This document shows, piece after piece, positions 52,491 to 61,211 of a stretch of 64,000 nucleotides of DNA. The DNA is from Dimorphilus gyrociliatus (taxonomy: Eukaryota; Animalia; Annelida), in NCBI GenBank assembly GCA_904063045.1, contig CAJFCJ010000013.1, positions 418,623 to 482,622 of the forward strand. The letters are read 5' to 3'. The notes under the pieces were generated by a model, which was not told the origin of the DNA, made no database searches, and saw only the letters and a program-made list of their open reading frames with translations. A program made the position numbers and the translations under genes. Every line of letters begins with the position of its first letter. Position 1 is the first letter of the stretch.

Positions 52491-54178
52491 CTTTATATTG
52501 ACTAATCTTAGCGTTTTTAATTGAGTTATATGCTACAGCTTGGTATCCATGTCCTACTTTACTATAAACTCATTATCCGAAACCTTATCCGAACTGTCAG
52601 AGCAAAGTTGTGTTCATATAGGCATCTTTAGACAATATTGCATATTGAAGGATATAATATACTGTATATGTGTATAAATATATATAATATTTCTTTTGTC
52701 GTACGATTGTTTCATTTTCATATTAAACATTTGGTACGGTAATTAATCTATGATTATTATTTTAAAATATAATCAAATTGTAATCTCTTTAGTTTTTAAT
52801 AGCTAAAAAAGGAATCTTAATGTATCATATAAAACTAACAGGTCTACTTGATAATATGATGGGAACATTTGAGAACAAAAGATTCTTCTTCAATTGGGAC
52901 AAAGAGTTAAAAAGTCTTGTTATATATTTTTTATTTTGTTTTGTTTAAGATGCCATCTATCGAGATGAGATTGAGCAATTTGTAATTTGTTTTTTGTTTT
53001 TCTTTTTTTAAGGCGTTATCGGTTTTTCCGACGTTCCCAACTGGAATACTGCATTTGTAAGATTGTGTTAAGCTGAAAGGAAGTAGATTAAAATATTAAT
53101 CGTATAACGAGTGAAATTATGCAGATGTTCTAAAGAAAATAGGTTTTTGTATAATTAAACAAGGCGTTTTAGTGAAGAATCAATGATTAGAGTGAAATAG
53201 ACGAAGCCTATTTATGAATGATTTGCATAGAGCTGATAAGAATGTCTTTTAAACTGATCAGACTGAAAAGTGATGTCAATTTCGATAAGGATTGCATTGA
53301 TTTTAAACCGTATACTCCAATCCAAATTAGATTAGGTACAAAAGGAATGTCGCTCTTAGGGTCGTAGGGTTGAGATGCTCTCTACTAGTAGTGCTGGTCT
53401 GTCTTTGACAAACGTCTGAAAGATGGCGCCTTTTGGAGAAATATATTTGTAATCATTTTGTACGTGTCTATGAATGTTTAAGAAAGGAGGGAATGCATAG
53501 AAAACAAATAAAAGGTCTAACAAAATTCTCCCATTCTCCAGTTTCTTGCCTTTCTCTCCTTTCACCCTTTTCGCACTTTTCTTTCTTTATTTAATCCTCT
53601 TTCCCAGTCTATTTTTTCAGGTCTTTTATATAATCCATTAACTGGGGAAAAAGAGTAAAAAAATCTTTTTCTCTATCACCGAAGGTTAGCTCTCTTTCGT
53701 GTCCCCTCTATGTAATATATACTGGTCATTTTCAGTTAAAGAGAGCAGGGATTCTGAGACAGTGCAGGTATGAAAATTGATGAGGAGGCGACTGCCTACT
53801 CTACCTGAGAAATTATAGTTACTTAGCTTAAAACGACTAAGTGTTCTGCATTATGCACGGCGCCGCATATGGCGCCATCCGTTGTATATAAGGGCTTGTT
53901 TATCTTCTTTTAAGCTTACTTTTTTGTGAGTCTCCCTGCTATTAAATGGAAGGCTCTTTTTCGCTTATGTATCTGATATAGTATTTAATTACTCTCATGT
54001 AAATTTTCATCTAAGAGAAAAGGATTTGTTCTTCAATAAAACTTGATATCATCTTCTCTCTATATATGTATATATATTATAAATACAGATATATACATAT
54101 ATATATATGTATATACATATATTTTTACAACATTGTTTGATATTCTGATAAACATACTGAAAATAACAAGAGAAGACA

Positions 54179-54448
54179 ATGGATTTTTATGAAGATGAAG
54201 TTGTTAATTACGCTACAGGGGTTTGTCAATTAAATTTTTATTAATTTCCCTTTACACTGTACCTATATATATTATATTATATTATATAGATATTTATCCC
54301 TTTATATATACTCATGGTTTCTCTATACTTTCATAATCGATAAATGTTTCCTTCATTTTTCATACATGTACTCCTTTTACTATTAACAAGAAGAGCTTAA
54401 CTAGAAAATGAATAATACATGCAATTTATTATATAAACGCTATATACA

Positions 54449-54490
<42 letters not shown>

Positions 54491-56771
54491 GGTCTACAGT
54501 ATATAATGAAGAATACGTTATAGGTATATTATATTTAAGGAAGCGCATACTATGCATATTTAGTTTGTATATAATATACCTGTTAACGCGTTATTTCCGT
54601 TTAAATTTTTGTTCTTTATATTTTATATATACGGTAATACTGTATATATTATATTCTCATATATACGTATATACGTCTAACAGATTCGGGCCCCACCCTT
54701 AGGAGACGCTTTATATCACATTTTCCTGTTCTGGCATAGGAACGATAGAGAATTTTCTGACCAGCTTATCGAACGATTGCAATGCGCTCGTAATGCCTTC
54801 AAATGTTGTTCTCAATATGATATATACAAGTCGGATGGGGATATGACGTTATGTCAAAGTATTTTATCTGGTGTTAAATATTGTTCAAAGGCACTGTTAA
54901 TAGCTAGTTGGGATTCACTTGAGCTATGGAGAGAATGCGAAGAAGCAATTAACGAAGAATTGGATATAGGAAGAAAATTTGTTGTATTACAACTTAATCC
55001 TCAACTGGATTTACCGACATCCTTATCGGAATGTAATGTTGTTAGTATAAAAGATGATGACTGGTGGATGAAACTATTAGATTCATTAGCACCGGTTGTC
55101 CATTTGTCGTCAACATCTCCAAGTTTGGCCGGTGTAAATCCTGGTAAGTGAAAATATTGAACAAGTATAAATAAAAATTAAATTTGGTACAAGCAGGAAA
55201 AACTAGAGTAGAATTTGCACGCATCAAAGCAATTCCTTCCCATTTATTTGCCATGATACACTCCCTTGAGAGCGTTCTTTCACTACTAAATTTCTCTAAA
55301 CTTGACTTTTTATCTGTATAACTTCATTATACAAATTATACGTCTTACTTCTTTATTTCATTATTAATAACGCTGTTTATTTAGACTTATTCTCTTTTCT
55401 TTTTAAATTAGCCTTACAGAGTGGGCACTTATTATTTAGCGCCCGGTCCCACCTCACTTGGCCAGGTAGAGAAATAATTGGTGATCAGGTACCCGAGGAG
55501 TTACTTTCGCATGGATTACAGGTATTATTTATTTGTAGTTACTATTTAGACGATTGTAAATTGTTCTATACTACTTTACACGGGTGTACACTTGTACCTG
55601 ATTTTTCCCTTTTCCCCGTCATTTAAATATCCCTGTAAACATGGTACAGATATAATTATGCATAGGAATCTAGTTAATATTCTACCTATAGAGAGGAGAG
55701 AAAGAAAAAAAGAGTGGAAAAGAAAGATTGAGATAGATAAATAGATAGATAGATAGATAGATAGATGGATTGATTAATATTAGATAGATATATAGCATAG
55801 ATAGAATGGTAAGTATAAAGAGAGAGAGAGAGAGAGAGAAAGAGAGGCAAAAGAAGTAGAAAAAATAGCATCTGTATAAGTAATTAAGTAATGGAGATTA
55901 GTTTAAGCCAAAAAAAATGAATGTATATATTTTTTTCAGGGAGAAAATCCCATATGAAAAGTGATATATAGAGTATTTCGTAAAAATAAATGTATAAATT
56001 AATACCTTCTATCAAAAATTCATGTATTATTTGAAAGGTTTGTCTTTTAATATCCCACAGATTGATCCTGAAGTCTATGAAAAAGCAGTTGGGACTCTTA
56101 TGTCTAGTTTAAAAATTAAGTGCCATTTATGCTTTTTCTCAACACCAGCTGCGGCAATATTCTTTATTGTCTGGTTCATATTCTGCCTCACACTAATACC
56201 TTTCATAGAAATTAAAGTGATTCTCTACGGACAGACTAGTAGCGGCCTTGAATACGTACACGGTGCTCTTGTTTGGCTTTGTACACTCACATTATATTTG
56301 TTCGTAAGTCACCTCGTCAAAAGACAGGTAAGATTAACCATTTAGAAAGCTTCCCTTACCAAAATAAGTTCCTTTCTTTACATTCATATATACAATATTC
56401 ACTGTATATGCAAACATAAATAGACTATATATAGTAAATAAAGCATGCAACTTTTCTCTCCCTCTCTGTTATGATTCTTTCTCGAGGTTTCTTTTTTCTT
56501 CTTCTTCTTCTTTTGATAGAGTACTCTAAAGCACTTTACTATTTGTCCTTATACACATTTAATTTATATCCAATACTAACAGATATATACAATATATATA
56601 TATATATAAAGCACTTGTAGAAATGTTTGTATATTTGTTTTATCTTTTCAGCTTCGAAAACAATTAAAAAAGACCATTTCAAGCGTCAATTCAATATTTA
56701 TCAAACAGAATGTACTTTTGGGTAGTGAGGAGTTAGGCCTAATAGACTGCAACAAGTATTACGTATCCTTT

Positions 56772-56807
<36 letters not shown>

Positions 56808-56813
56808 TACTAG
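54179..56813 (+). CDS. N-terminal TIR domain fused to a TMEM268-like two-TM module; exons 54179-54220, 54684-55143, 55412-55521, 56061-56327, 56652-~56813 (3' end uncertain)
   Basis: TIR-like LYHIFLFWHRNDREFSDQLIERLQ...SILSGVKYCSKALLIASWDSLELWRECEEA...KFVVLQL..LPTSL; then VPEELLSHGLQ|IDPEVYEKAV, two hydrophobic helices, and KQLKKTISSVNSIFIKQNVLLG resembling TMEM268. All junction phases are compatible. Confidence 0.7.
54450..54487. repeat. (TA)n microsatellite, intronic
   Basis: About 19 TA units read directly. Similar TA tracts occur near 2596-2617, 10400-10410, 35490-35500 and 56777-56803. Confidence 0.9.
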
Positions 56814-56908
56814 TAATAATCCCTTATAATGTTTTTTTACTATCTATAATCTTTTATCTCCGTAACTGCAATTAAAACGGGTAGAGGAGTGAGAGCAGGG
56901 TATCTTGA

Positions 56909-57816
56909 TTATAAATTATTAGCTTTACCGTAGTCTATAATTCTTTGCAGGGCATTATTTTTCGTTTGTTCATCAAGTCTTTTATTAATTAATTCCATTT
57001 GCCACGCTTCTGCCCTCATATTACGGCCGACTGATGAACATGTAATAGAACTTTTTCTACTATTATCTTCTTCTGGTTTGGTAGCAATTTTTACTGTCTT
57101 TTCAATACGAATTGGTGGTTCTTGATCTATTTTATAGTGTACATCATTTGCATCATCTACGTAATTTTCATGTTCTATTGAGGGTCTTTTATGCAATCTC
57201 TCCCTTTTTACTTCTTCTTTTTCTTCTGGGGACAAAATATAGTCATTATCACCATCTGTTCTGGACGCAAAGTCCTCATCTCCATCGTCGAATGTTGCTA
57301 TTTTAACTCTAGTTCGAGAGGGACTAGGCTTAAAGATATCGTTTTTACCAGGTTGAACCATTCTAGGTACATAGTCAAATACATCAACCTATAGAGTATA
57401 AAAAATTAAGTATATTTGCTCGAGAATATTAAATAGAATACTAACATCGTTCATTTCATCCATCATTCGCTTTTCATATATATCGGGATACAATTTCTTT
57501 AGACAATTTTTTCTCAGTCTATTAATAGGTTGTACTCTTAATGATCGGCTCGGTAGCTTTAATTGGTCACTTTTTTGCTTTTCAATAGTCCATTTAAACA
57601 TGAGAACTGCATTGGAAAAAAAATCATGTAACTGTCCATAAAGTTATTTGTCGATACCATTAGCGGCCATTTTGTTACTATGACAATAGTACAAACAATT
57701 AAGCCTAGTTTCGATTTGGGATCTATTTTTTTTTGGGGGAATATAGAGTAGACGGAATATATAATATATTTCCTAATTATGAAATTCTCTTACCTTTCCT
57801 TATCCCATATTTCCAT
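56909..57816 (-). CDS. Uncharacterised acidic/charged protein, about 4 exons; start uncertain
   Basis: Possible splice path MEIWDKER|SQIETRLNCLYYCH|ILMFKWTIEK...MMDEMND|VDVFDYVPRMVQPGKND...QRIIDYGKANNL with GT-AG introns. No domain recognised. Confidence 0.55.
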
Positions 57817-57969
57817 TCCTGCTACTTTCCTTTTCACTTATCCTGAATACTTTTCAACGCTTAATATCTCTCATAAAAAGAGAATCATACTCATTAGGAT
57901 TATTTTTCGTTCATTAGAATACAAAAAAGAGAAAATATTCCTTTTTTCTTGTTAATTAAAATCAAATTT

Positions 57970-58110
57970 ATTCATTCATTCATTCACTACCTACTGACGA
58001 ATATATAGGGTATTCACTCATTCATTCATTTATCCATCCATTTATCCATCCATCCATCCATATATCTATTTGTCTGTCTATCTATCTATCCATACATACA
58101 TACATACATT
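57970..58110. repeat. Mosaic tetranucleotide microsatellite (ATTC/ATCC/ATCT/ATAC)
   Basis: Successive runs of related 4-mers read directly. Confidence 0.8.
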
Positions 58111-58274
58111 CGCACATTCATTACCTGTACCATTGTTATATCCTTTTCATAGCTCTTTTTCTTTTCTATACGTTACAAACACTAACAAACCATGTAAACA
58201 GGCACAAAAACGAAATACTCTCATATTTTTCATTATCATTATTTTTTTCCCTTATATTTTTATCCTCTAATCAT

Positions 58275-58986
58275 TTACTTTTTGCAACGACACTCAGGTT
58301 CATAATAAATTTCTTCAGGGTTATTCCAACTTCTTTTACCGGGACCATTCCAATCAGCTGCCTGTTTCAGGGCTTAAATAGAACAGCTTTATTAAAGCTT
58401 AATTATTATTTTTCTCTTTTTTTTTACATAGAAATAGACTTTATCATTTTTTTAAAATTATAAATTCTTTTCATTCGAGAATAGGCCTACCGAATAATTT
58501 AGCTCCAACGCTTGAGGGAGAGCGTAGCCTAGCATGAATAAGAAAAATTGAATAAATATGTATTATGCAAAAATTTTTCTATTAATAAATGATAATAAGA
58601 TATTTATTATTAGTTATTTGACAAACTCACTTCATGTAATGCATTTCGATTTCTTTGACGATATCCTTCAGAATTGTATTAGTTCCATCCTTTTTTAAAC
58701 TTTCCACCCTTGATTAGGAAAAGATGCCATATATGGATAAAAGACATTTACATAATTGAAAATGCACTTTGGTCAAATTTTTTCGTTTTTTTGTATTAAA
58801 ATTTTTTTTTTTTTGATTTAGGTTTCGTTGGCGGCTTTCATCTTTCTTTCTCAAATGTAACGAAATAGGGACACTATAAGAGCTTAGAATAATCTTGGAG
58901 CTTTATTAATAAAACTTACTTTTTATAATTAAACGAAAAATGGAATTAATATATTTGAAAGGTATAAAAAATTTCATTTATTCATT

Positions 58987-59026
<40 letters not shown>

Positions 59027-59162
59027 GAGGAGAGAGGGGGAAGGGAGAAAAAATAAAACAGAGAAAAATAAATGAGATATCCTTTAGAACTTACATTGTA
59101 CTTGGTCTTATTAAAATTACTAGCCAACAGCCATATAGATAAATAAGTAATCTTCCATTCAT
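58275..59162 (-). CDS. Candidate small secreted prepropeptide (neuropeptide-precursor-like), 3-4 short exons
   Basis: Signal-peptide exon MNGRLLIYLYGCWLVILIRPST (59162-59095, gtaagt donor); exon 58708-58631 (VESLKKDGTNTILKDIVKEIEMHYM, gtgagt donor); a 38-nt exon near 58491-58528; last exon ADWNGPGKRSWNNPEEIYYEPECRCKK*. Confidence 0.45.
58991..59022. repeat. (AG)n microsatellite
   Basis: 16 AG units read directly. Confidence 0.9.
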
Positions 59163-59863
59163 TCTTGAACGAATTAACAGGATCGTTTGACTCTTATCAG
59201 TCTAGTGTCTCAACTTTAAAGAAAACCAAATCGGGCTGATTTATTATAATAATTTGATGCTAATTGAAAGCCTCTTCTCATTAGCAAATTTTTTTGTTAA
59301 ATGACAAAAAAATTCTGTCTTTTTCTTTTGTTTTCCTTAATATCTAATTTAAATAGTTACACTTTTTCTACTACGAAATTGGACCTTGTCTGGTAAGCAA
59401 TTCTCTTTTCTTGTCAGTTTCTTACTTAAAAAAAGTTTTTTTTAAGGCTTACTATCAAGAAATACTGTCTAAAAAGCATAACTCTTTCGCCAACCCAACT
59501 TTTAACGCGGAAGAAGATCTATCTGCTTCATCCTCAATGACAACCTGTCTGTCGGATATTGTTATCAAAGAAGATCTGTCCGAAGAAACGGAAGACAAAC
59601 TACTATCTTATAGCGCCGAGTACACGAGTCTACTGATAAATAGGAACTTTTCATTTGATCACTCAAATTTACATTGTATAGGATTTCCGTGCCTTTGTCA
59701 GTTCGCGCAGCATAAAAACAATATTCGATCTAAATAGGAACTTCTTGGAATCTGTATTTCCCATTTATTTAAAGGTAAAATAAAATTCAATTTTTAGTTA
59801 AAAAGTATATCAAAGCACATTTTGTTTTAATGTCGGGAAATTCAGAAAAAATCTCTCTTCCTT

Positions 59864-61211
59864 TTAAAATAGATAAACGATCAAGAGGAAGGCGGAAATG
59901 AAACCGAAGAAAACGTTTACTTTATTTACGGCTGCAGAATTTACTGCAAAAAAAAAAAGAAAATCATTATACCTAATACATTATTAATTGTATGTAAATA
60001 ATATACAGAATATATACAAATTAATTGCTACCTACCAATAAATTCAATTTTAAAATTAGCTTCTTTCTCCTCATTGTTCTCTAGAACAACCTTTATAGTC
60101 ATCTTAATCTCACCCTCTAAATCTGCTTCATCAGAAAAGCTAATATCACCAGTATAATTACGCGTGCCACTATTATCTTCGATTTTTAAACCAACTCCGT
60201 AATTGGTGTTGCCGCAAGTAACGCTATTCTTATCGTTTCCCCATATCAAGGCCGTTTCATTGCAATCGATATCTGCAGTTGTGCGGATACTGCACGGTAA
60301 CGTCACATGTCCTGGCTTAAACGCTTTAATCGAATAATTTTTACAACTCAAATGAATTTGGGAAGTGATGCCTGCAACATCAGTATTCTGTTCCTCCGAA
60401 GGCTCCGTTGTGGCCACAGTTTCTGTTACTTTTGTTGATTCGATAGCTTTTTCCGTACTTGGAGTTAAGTTACCCTGTTTAGGCTCGACGGTTGATATTT
60501 TGCTATCAAGATTCGATTGTGTAGATGATGACTCAACTCCAACAGATGAAGTGGTCAAATTTTCTGAAATATCGAATGTTTTTACAGTGACAGTATCCTC
60601 CGCAGTGTTGTTGGTTGTGCTGGTAGTGACAGTATTATCTGCAATAGTATTGGTTGTATTGACAGCGGTCTCATTGATAGAAGTTTTAGAATCTGCCACT
60701 GTTGGAGCTTGATTCGTTGTTCTATCATTCGCTGTTGAATCTTGTAACTTGGAAGTTGTTGTTTGCTTATTATCTTCTTCGGTAGAAGTGGAAATTTTCT
60801 TGGAAGTTTGCAAACTAGCTGTACCAGTCGTTTGCGCTGTTGGTTCTTTTGTGCTCTTATCAGTCTCTGAAGTAGTTGAAGGTGACTTCGTTGTTGAGAG
60901 ACCTTCTGAAGTAACAGCCGTATTTCCTCCAACGGTAGTAGTAGCTTCGGCTGCATCTCCTACAATATTTTAGAATATAGCAATTTATTACAACATATGA
61001 AAAATAGAAAAGTCGTTTTCATACCTTTCACATCATCATTGTTTAATTTTGCAGCTGTAGATGTAATTGTAGTTTCTTGACCTGTAAAAAAGACAAGATT
61101 GATAGTCACTTCTATAATCATTTTCGCTCTTAAAAACAATTTACCTGTGACGAATAGCACAGTCATATGACAGAGAACTGCTACAAGAAAACATCTCTTC
61201 GACATCATCAT
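59864..61211 (-). CDS. Probably GPI-anchored mucin-like (Thr/Ser-rich) surface protein with one degenerate Ig-like domain; exons 61211-61145, 61081-61025, 60959-60036 and a final exon ending at 59864
   Basis: Signal peptide MMMSKRCFLVAVLCHMTVLFVTG; long T/S-rich stalk; HVTLPCSI...LIWG...TRNYTGDI; hydrophobic C-terminus NSAAVNKVNVFFGFISAFLLIVYLF*. All introns are phase 1. Confidence 0.72.

Follow-up and report, generated by a model that had tools for sequence, protein, structure and literature searches.

The DNA analysed here, referred to as the window, is a stretch of 64,000 nucleotides from the marine annelid Dimorphilus gyrociliatus (GenBank assembly GCA_904063045.1, contig CAJFCJ010000013.1, positions 418,623 to 482,622 of the forward strand), and all coordinates below are those of the window. 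Its TIR–TMEM268-like locus is a single gene of seven exons (54179-59737, +), with a coding length of 1314 nt for a protein of 438 residues. In this protein an N-terminal TIR domain is fused to a membrane module of the DUF4481/TMEM268 type. The gene is transcribed, spliced and under purifying selection. A sequence-only reading of the same DNA had earlier described five exons that splice in frame into such a protein. Exons 1 to 4 and the start of exon 5 stand as given there, with GT..AG borders and joints in transcript contigs, but the 3' end does not, and two further exons belong to the gene.

Direct reading of the DNA shows GT..AG at all borders of exons 1 to 5, and the frame is kept on splicing. 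Exon 1 (54179-54220, +) consists of the ATG and 13 codons, and both its ATG and its GT donor are kept in a related species. The 5' untranslated region (UTR) would cover at least 54052-54178 (+), a start that follows from the 169 contig letters before exon 2 if these are contiguous with exon 1. Two short upstream ATGs lie in this region, each with a short reading frame only. Exon 2 (54684-55143, +) encodes the entire TIR in 153 codons and carries the first base of a split codon. Exon 3 (55412-55521, +) encodes a linker and the start of the DUF4481-like module, and exon 4 (56061-56327, +) the two transmembrane helices of a hairpin. Exon 5 (56652-56762, +) has a corrected 3' end, the donor of which (TAC|GTATCC) is conserved in the related species. 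It is followed by intron 5 (56763-59356, +; 2594 nt), within which expressed minus-strand gene(s) are located. Exon 6 (59357-59392, +) is only 36 nt long and its 12 codons (LHFFYYEIGPCL) are identical in the related species at 12 of 12 residues, with the AG and GT borders kept. Exon 7 (59447-59737, +), with 96 codons and the stop, encodes the C-terminal end of the DUF4481 module. A pattern scan locates an AATAAA at 59779-59784 (+), 42 nt past the stop, which is likely to be used as the polyadenylation signal.

The transcript data are assembled contigs of one public run (X1), the type of which is unrecorded; the contigs carry spliced joints. Joints at 54219/54683, 55142/55411, 55517/56057 and 56324/56649 are present in these contigs. 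One contig of 1007 nt contains exons 2, 3 and 4 joined at the predicted sites, together with the 169 letters 5' of exon 2, while exons 1 and 2, and likewise exons 4 and 5, are connected by separate contig joints, the second of which has 27 letters on its shorter side. Intron 2 is not covered by any contig (depth 0 at 55144-55342). The exon 2-3-4 contig and the uncovered intron 2 therefore place the TIR and the membrane exons in one spliced RNA. The fusion of a TIR to a two-helix module of the TMEM268/DUF4481 type within one transcript, as proposed by the sequence-only reading, is borne out by this contig, by Pfam and by the relatives described below, and the separate genes that it had named as the opposite outcome were not found.

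This gene differs from the reference annotation. The translation of exon 2 is 100% identical to the GenBank protein DgyrCDS9362 of contig CAJFCJ010000013.1, a model of 169 residues in which exons 1 and 2 are followed by two read-through codons and a stop at 55149-55151, while exons 3 to 7 are without any GenBank model. Following GenBank, the locus would hold two separate genes, namely the TIR-only DgyrCDS9362, which stops at the very beginning of intron 2, together with, at most, a downstream membrane protein unrelated to it. However, the GT..AG joint 55142/55411 ties the TIR exon to exon 3 in a contig that carries exon 4 as well, intron 2 has no contig, and both halves lie in one chain in the paralogous, nemertean and bivalve proteins. 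We rejected the two-gene arrangement, which is contradicted by the spliced contig and which we consider scarcely credible. The reference annotation at this locus is thus wrong, with a TIR stub in place of the gene and five coding exons left without a model.

At the 3' end, the joint between exons 6 and 7 (59391/59446, GT..AG) is present in an X1 contig, whereas an exon 5/6 junction (56762 to 59357) is not among the X1 contig joints. Assembled contigs drop rare paths, and an absent joint is therefore weak evidence. Conservation and collinearity with the relatives suggest that exon 5 is linked to exon 6. The contig with exons 6 and 7 (803 nt, 59094-59900) is unspliced back to 59094 and has a depth of 596 as compared to 60 for exons 1 to 4. 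It contains the plus-strand intron 59393-59446 (GT..AG) and also a minus-strand joint, 58707/59094 (CT..AC). We take it to be a merge of overlapping transcripts from both strands made by the assembler, although it could be an abundant plus-strand transcript which begins inside intron 5 and covers exons 6 and 7. In the latter case the gene might end in exon 5, giving a protein of 347 residues with a tail encoded by a (TA)n run. Such an ending agrees with the absent joint and with the depth and unspliced start of the 803-nt contig. The GenBank model of the D. gyrociliatus paralogue (DgyrCDS8831, P0003) stops likewise; it ends in ...CNKYYVSFLFTILRAFI, apparently by reading past the equivalent donor of exon 5, and probably lacks the last two exons. 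Nevertheless, the tail past exon 5 is not conserved, being VSFFMSFF-stop in the related species and VSFFHIYIYIYIYIQY-stop in D. gyrociliatus, whereas the donor at 56762/56763 is. Moreover, exons 6 and 7 are under purifying selection with the same frame logic, and they complete the DUF4481 module in the order seen in nemertean and oyster proteins. The read-through of exon 5 through (TA)n to the stop at 56813 was therefore rejected, and an end of the gene in exon 5 is very improbable. (TA)n microsatellites are located at 54438-54496 in intron 1 and at 56780-56806 just past the exon 5 donor; the second run gave rise to the spurious open tail of the earlier five-exon model.

For the related species, we compared the locus with a 16.7-kb syntenic contig (L001, run SRR23372228), which shares with it an aldehyde dehydrogenase neighbour. 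All seven exons are present in this contig with matching AG and GT borders. The ratio of nonsynonymous to synonymous substitutions (dN/dS; Nei-Gojobori, per exon) for exons 2 to 7 is 0.068, 0.011, 0.074, 0.046, 0 and 0.060, respectively, and 0.65 for the 14 codons of exon 1. The synonymous divergence (dS) is about 0.4-1.7 across the exons and 0.95 for the TIR exon. In exon 3, 35 of 36 residues match. Among the four introns compared, three are about 50% identical and the second is 81% identical. This exon-wide conservation argues that the gene is functional in both species over its entire length.

Exon 2 encodes a whole TIR domain, which is of the TLR/MyD88 type rather than the SARM1 type. Pfam searches were made with the D. 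gyrociliatus exons singly, and exon 2 alone matched TIR_2 with 16.7 bits (E 0.011; curated cutoff 28 bits). The 169-residue GenBank model had no match in Pfam, a phmmer search of PDB sequences with exon 2 by itself produced nothing beyond a chance match (eL18, E 0.21), and a word search with exon 2, covering only proteins of 84-268 residues, gave the GenBank stub and one fragment of a relative. At E<=1e-3, an exhaustive search yielded 17 relatives; among those scanned with Pfam, the majority lie above its TIR cutoffs. By atlas language-model features, exon 2 lies at 0.92 to TIR clusters. A profile built from the family matches the TIRs of TLR15/2, TLR1, TLR10, TLR2 and TLR6 at E 1e-20 to 1e-25 (best 6.7e-25), MyD88 at 1e-15, AbTIR at 1e-8 and plant TIRs at 1e-4 or worse. 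In the Pfam TIR check proposed by the sequence-only reading, exon 2 by itself stays under the cutoff, while most of its scanned relatives exceed theirs.

An AlphaFold2 model of exon 2, made with an alignment of 21 family TIRs, has a predicted local distance difference test score (pLDDT) of 88.4 and a predicted template modelling score (pTM) of 0.81. Its strands (residues 11-16, 41-43, 67-74, 99-103 and 118-121), with helices in between, follow the five-strand flavodoxin-like order of TIR domains. All 26 Foldseek matches at E<=1e-3 are TIR domains, with MyD88 and TLR1 first. In VIA-align, the TLR1 TIR has a Z of 15.3, with 133 residues aligned at a root-mean-square deviation of 2.5 A. Hydra TRR-2 and oyster TIR-STING each reach 14.1, and SARM1 reaches about 11.9. 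The N-terminal TIR-like domain read from the sequence is hence supported by all three structural approaches, and the motifs quoted along with it (YHIFLFWHRNDREF, SLELWRECEEA, PEELLSHGLQ and SSVNSIFIKQNVLLG) are present, as are the two hydrophobic helices of exon 4. A closeness to SARM1 was not supported, the nearest domains being those of TLR1/2/6/10/15 and MyD88. The parts expected of a SARM1-family protein are also missing, as ARM and SAM were unmatched in the Pfam scan and merely 14 residues precede exon 2. The layout of Toll-like or interleukin-1 receptors is not seen either; the TIR begins at about residue 24, no hydrophobic leader stands before it, and leucine-rich repeats (LRRs) and immunoglobulin (Ig) domains were unmatched. 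The BB-loop region (SQYDIYKSDGDM) does not contain the 'RD' motif that most family members keep.

The invariant Trp of the family is residue 82 of exon 2, and the Glu of the W-R-E-C-E stretch (codon 54939-54941, +) follows four residues on, as residue 86 of exon 2 and residue 100 of the protein. We take helix 76-92 of the AlphaFold2 model, which holds this Glu, to be alpha-C. In the profile alignment, a comparison of sequences only, it falls on the Glu of 'WCxYE' in TLRs. According to Table S2 of Hurieva et al. 2026 (bioRxiv 10.64898/2026.04.20.719644), the residue at the catalytic position is E642 in SARM1, E716 in TLR2 and E750 in TLR4. Since the title of PDB entry 1o77 names C713 of TLR2, E716 is the W+4 residue, and the Glu picked out by the sequence-only reading as W-x3-E is the right one and occupies the published catalytic position. 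Its use as a mark of NADase activity was not upheld. The same Glu is present in TLR2 and TLR4 and is replaced by Gln in oyster relatives, so that its presence is no proof of such activity.

Within the family, the Glu is kept in 15 of 21 TIRs, including both worm paralogues, the related species, the nemerteans and Ridgeia; the other six have Gln (three oysters) or Asp, Met and Ser (one each). Bivalves differ among themselves at this position, with Gln in three oyster TIR-DUF4481 proteins (P0020-P0022) and Glu in four scallop ones. In the four scallop proteins, Table S2 of the above preprint records GLU at 1.5-2.3 A from E85 of ThsB. The same study obtained product in E. coli from 12 of 61 Glu-bearing animal TIRs, the active set including TLR4 and two invertebrate TLR TIRs, which make cyclic ADP-ribose (cADPR). 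In TLR4 and several invertebrate TIRs, cADPR was made in a Glu-dependent manner (10.64898/2026.04.20.719644).

The C-terminal half of the protein is assigned by sequence comparison to the DUF4481/TMEM268 family, and comprises the linker, the two-helix hairpin and a C-terminal domain, some 145 residues long, which ends in H...CLCQ. Exon 4 has two hydrophobic helices (Kyte-Doolittle values of 2.69 and 1.82 in 19-residue windows), with basic residues ahead of the first helix and a KRQLRKQLKK run behind the second. As the protein has neither a signal peptide nor an ectodomain, and both helices are bordered by basic residues (positive-inside rule), the TIR and the C-terminal domain would both be cytosolic, with a short loop on the far side. 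This predicted topology, together with the hydropathy, agrees with the placement of both termini on the same side of the membrane in the sequence-only reading.

In Pfam, exon 7 matched DUF4481 (PF14800) with 19.7 bits (E 5.9e-4; cutoff 25) at profile positions 228-292 of 293, and exons 3, 4 and 5 taken singly had no match. Over exon 4, the identity to the paralogue P0003 is 51% (E 1e-31). P0003 is encoded on another contig of the same genome and carries a TIR too; the TIRs of the two worm paralogues are 37% identical. The P0003 region that matches exon 4 reaches 27.9 bits for DUF4481 (cutoff 25) at profile positions 24-153. When compared exon by exon with full-length relatives, exons 2, 3, 4, 6 and 7 take up successive positions in the chain, while exon 5 was set too far C-terminal by the aligner. 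Exon 6 falls on the 'FNIYFLYYQRQEC' block of nemertean and oyster proteins, and the HC..PCLCQ of exon 7 aligns with the RHT....CLCQ of the relatives, the H...CLCQ motif being common to all. An AlphaFold2 model of the DUF4481 module of the nemertean Lineus (pLDDT 63, below 50 in the C-terminal third) served for an atlas shape search only, and no claim on the fold is made from it.

The human TMEM268 is a protein of 342 residues that has no TIR; its helices span 104-126 and 130-152, and DUF4481 covers residues 38-328 (PMC6748091). Work in mice and in human cells shows that TMEM268 uses residues 1-152 to bind the tails of both ITGB4 and CD11b. The protein shields these partners from lysosomal degradation and supports antibacterial defence, and sepsis is worse in mice that lack it (PMC6748091, PMC11169502). 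The arthropod and chordate DUF4481 clusters among those seen contain PF14800 only, without a TIR, which, together with the human protein, agrees with the earlier statement that vertebrate TMEM268 has none. Chordate TMEM268 clusters of the atlas are among the nearest neighbours of the C-terminal half of an oyster relative.

By sequence, the TIR-DUF4481 family spans annelids, nemerteans and bivalves. The combined design is found in the nemerteans Lineus longissimus (LOC135487228) and Tubulanus polymorphus (LOC141899026), in the oysters Saccostrea (LOC134252490), Crassostrea virginica (LOC111118802) and Magallana gigas (K1R0M7), in the ark clam Tegillarca (KAJ8307269) and in the paralogue DgyrCDS8831. 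PF01582, PF13676 and PF14800 are on record for the oyster proteins. A mollusc cluster of 54 members, with TIR proteins of 527 residues, matches the shape of the Lineus module in the atlas (TM 0.67). A TIR-only model of the tubeworm Ridgeia is among the closest TIR matches and is apparently cut at the same exon border. A word search with P0003 returned P0003 itself only.

Four scallop proteins, including Mizuhopecten A0A210Q012, are listed as 'DUF4481' in Table S2 of Hurieva et al. (10.64898/2026.04.20.719644), and we read the 'no' given for their cluster representative in Table S3 as not assayed in that preprint. In the open literature, we found no paper linking TMEM268, C9orf91 or DUF4481 with TIR. 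The D. gyrociliatus gene is thus a new member of a catalogued but uncharacterised family, which is represented by public entries named 'uncharacterized protein' and by a preprint table. The sequence-only reading had called it a little-described module; uncharacterised it is, but it is not peculiar to the worm. Invertebrate 'ecTIR-DC' families have reportedly been classified by Gerdol and colleagues in 2017.

Lophotrochozoan TIR-DUF4481 proteins are alike in having an N-terminal TIR with the invariant Trp and, in most of them, the Glu, a linker with G-(Q/H)-(V/L)-L, two membrane helices, a Y-Y/F...C block and H...CLCQ. The worm proteins are shorter than the others (438 as compared to 470-550 residues), have neither a long N-terminal leader nor a C-terminal extension, and share in the membrane region only some 15% identity with the nemertean and oyster proteins. 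The present copy stands apart by its missing BB-loop 'RD', and the oysters by Gln in place of Glu. Vertebrate TMEM268 (C9orf91) likewise has two adjacent membrane helices and the DUF4481 module, the end of whose profile is matched by exon 7; it differs in its 342 residues without a TIR, and stabilisation of ITGB4/CD11b is known for the mammalian protein.

On the TIR side, the domains of TLR1/2/6/10/15, MyD88 and Hydra TRR-2 are the best profile and structure matches and share the box-1-like start and W-x3-E. A TLR, however, carries its TIR on the C-terminal side of a large LRR ectodomain and a single membrane helix, whereas the worm TIR is N-terminal to a hairpin and there is no ectodomain; MyD88, in contrast to the worm protein, is soluble and has a death domain. 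SARM1, the plant TIR-NB-LRR proteins (TNLs), ThsB of Thoeris and AbTIR contain a domain of the same TIR fold as the worm protein, with Glu at the corresponding site of alpha-C. The E-values to these NAD+-cleaving TIRs are far weaker, the Z to SARM1 is lower than that to TLR1, and the worm protein is without ARM/SAM, NB-ARC or SLOG. Oyster TIR-STING (PDB 6wt6/6wt7) resembles it as a non-receptor TIR fused to a second part, but this part is STING and there is no DUF4481 hairpin. TRAM and TIRAP are lipid-tethered TIR adaptors, held by a myristoyl group and a PIP2-binding motif, respectively. These too are non-receptor TIRs tethered to a membrane-targeting part, and unlike the worm protein they do not contain the DUF4481 hairpin.

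The explanation that fits best is that of a membrane-held TIR scaffold, which acts by partner docking and TIR-TIR assembly, maybe with some cADPR output, and we consider it reasonably probable. The DUF4481 hairpin would hold and concentrate the cytosol-facing TIR at the membrane, and, if the analogy to TMEM268 of mouse and human holds, it may dock on the membrane-proximal tail of a partner, for example an integrin. Clustering would then allow the TIR to relay a signal by self-assembly or by assembly with further TIR proteins. Because the Glu of the catalytic position is kept, this signal may include some turnover of nicotinamide adenine dinucleotide (NAD+) to cADPR, as in TLR-type TIRs. As the main output, scaffold-type TIR-TIR assembly is likelier than an enzymatic one, since the TIR is TLR/MyD88-like and the Glu is lost in oysters. 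Several points weigh against this scaffold. The function of the family is a prediction for every member, and integrin binding is extrapolated from the mammalian protein, to which sequence identity is low. The exon-2 TIR lies under the Pfam cutoff, and the degenerate BB-loop could mean a weakening of either kind of TIR activity. The absence of the exon 5/6 joint and the ten-fold deeper contig of exons 6 and 7, with its minus-strand intron, likewise tell against it.

It is possible, though on balance doubtful, that the protein is chiefly a membrane-tethered TIR enzyme, in which oligomerisation would enable the Glu site to cleave or cyclise NAD+, leading either to its depletion and cell death or to a cADPR-type messenger. 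The Glu lies at the catalytic position in the presumed alpha-C helix, most family TIRs and the four scallop proteins share it, and Glu-dependent cADPR production by TLR4 and several invertebrate TIRs makes such an activity plausible. Yet most Glu-bearing animal TIRs assayed gave no product in E. coli, and where the Glu is replaced by Gln, Asp, Met or Ser the TIR is kept, in oysters along with the entire architecture. The greater nearness to TLR/MyD88 than to SARM1 or the bacterial NADases, both by sequence and by fold, and the degenerate BB-loop motif of this copy also speak against the enzyme. Alternatively, the protein might be a TMEM268-like membrane chaperone which guards receptors such as integrins from lysosomal degradation, with the TIR as an additional, non-signalling binding surface. 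That a DUF4481 module lacking a TIR has been conserved from arthropods to chordates, that the membrane exon is better conserved than the TIR between the worm paralogues, and that such a function is documented in mammals (PMC6748091, PMC11169502) would suit a chaperone. Selection on the TIR exon, however, is as strong as on the rest of the gene, the TIR is retained across three phyla, and most of the family retains the invariant Trp and the Glu of the catalytic position, which makes a chaperone with a silent TIR unlikely.

The fusion may tie the little-understood vertebrate TMEM268, with its integrin-stabilising and antibacterial phenotypes, to TIR signalling. As a more speculative extension, to which we give little weight, the fusion could serve as a 'Rosetta stone' for a functional coupling of the TMEM268 family to TIR signalling. 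The lophotrochozoan protein would then be a membrane-tethered, clustering-activated producer of a cADPR-type signal beside adhesion receptors, and vertebrate TMEM268 would work with separate TIR proteins, either TLRs or adaptors. The D. gyrociliatus gene is a compact example of a family found in three phyla, and its 153-residue TIR, being on one exon, is easy to express. The worms, nemerteans and scallops on one side and the oysters on the other provide a natural Glu/Gln contrast.

Within intron 5, the NCBI annotation places a minus-strand gene of 217 residues at 56909-57670. Minus-strand CT..AC joints are present at 57385/57443, 58372/58491, 58527/58630 and 58707/59094 (within 56816-59391), the first three of which share a depth of 138.5 with a contig of 1652 nt over 56816-57958. 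From this shared depth, the annotated gene and the further minus-strand spliced stretch may be one transcription unit. A minus-strand open reading frame (ORF) at 56909-57361 has a strongly conserved end, ...RNMRAEAWQMELINKRL...GKANNL, that resembles the terminus of an amidated peptide. Beyond the last exon, a neighbouring ORF (60028-60813, -) is rich in Ser/Thr, with a mucin-like composition and a Cys-containing C-terminal domain. Its counterpart in the related species (L001 8813-10171, -) is much longer, with a largest ORF of 452 residues as compared to 261, a difference in length that points to fast evolution.

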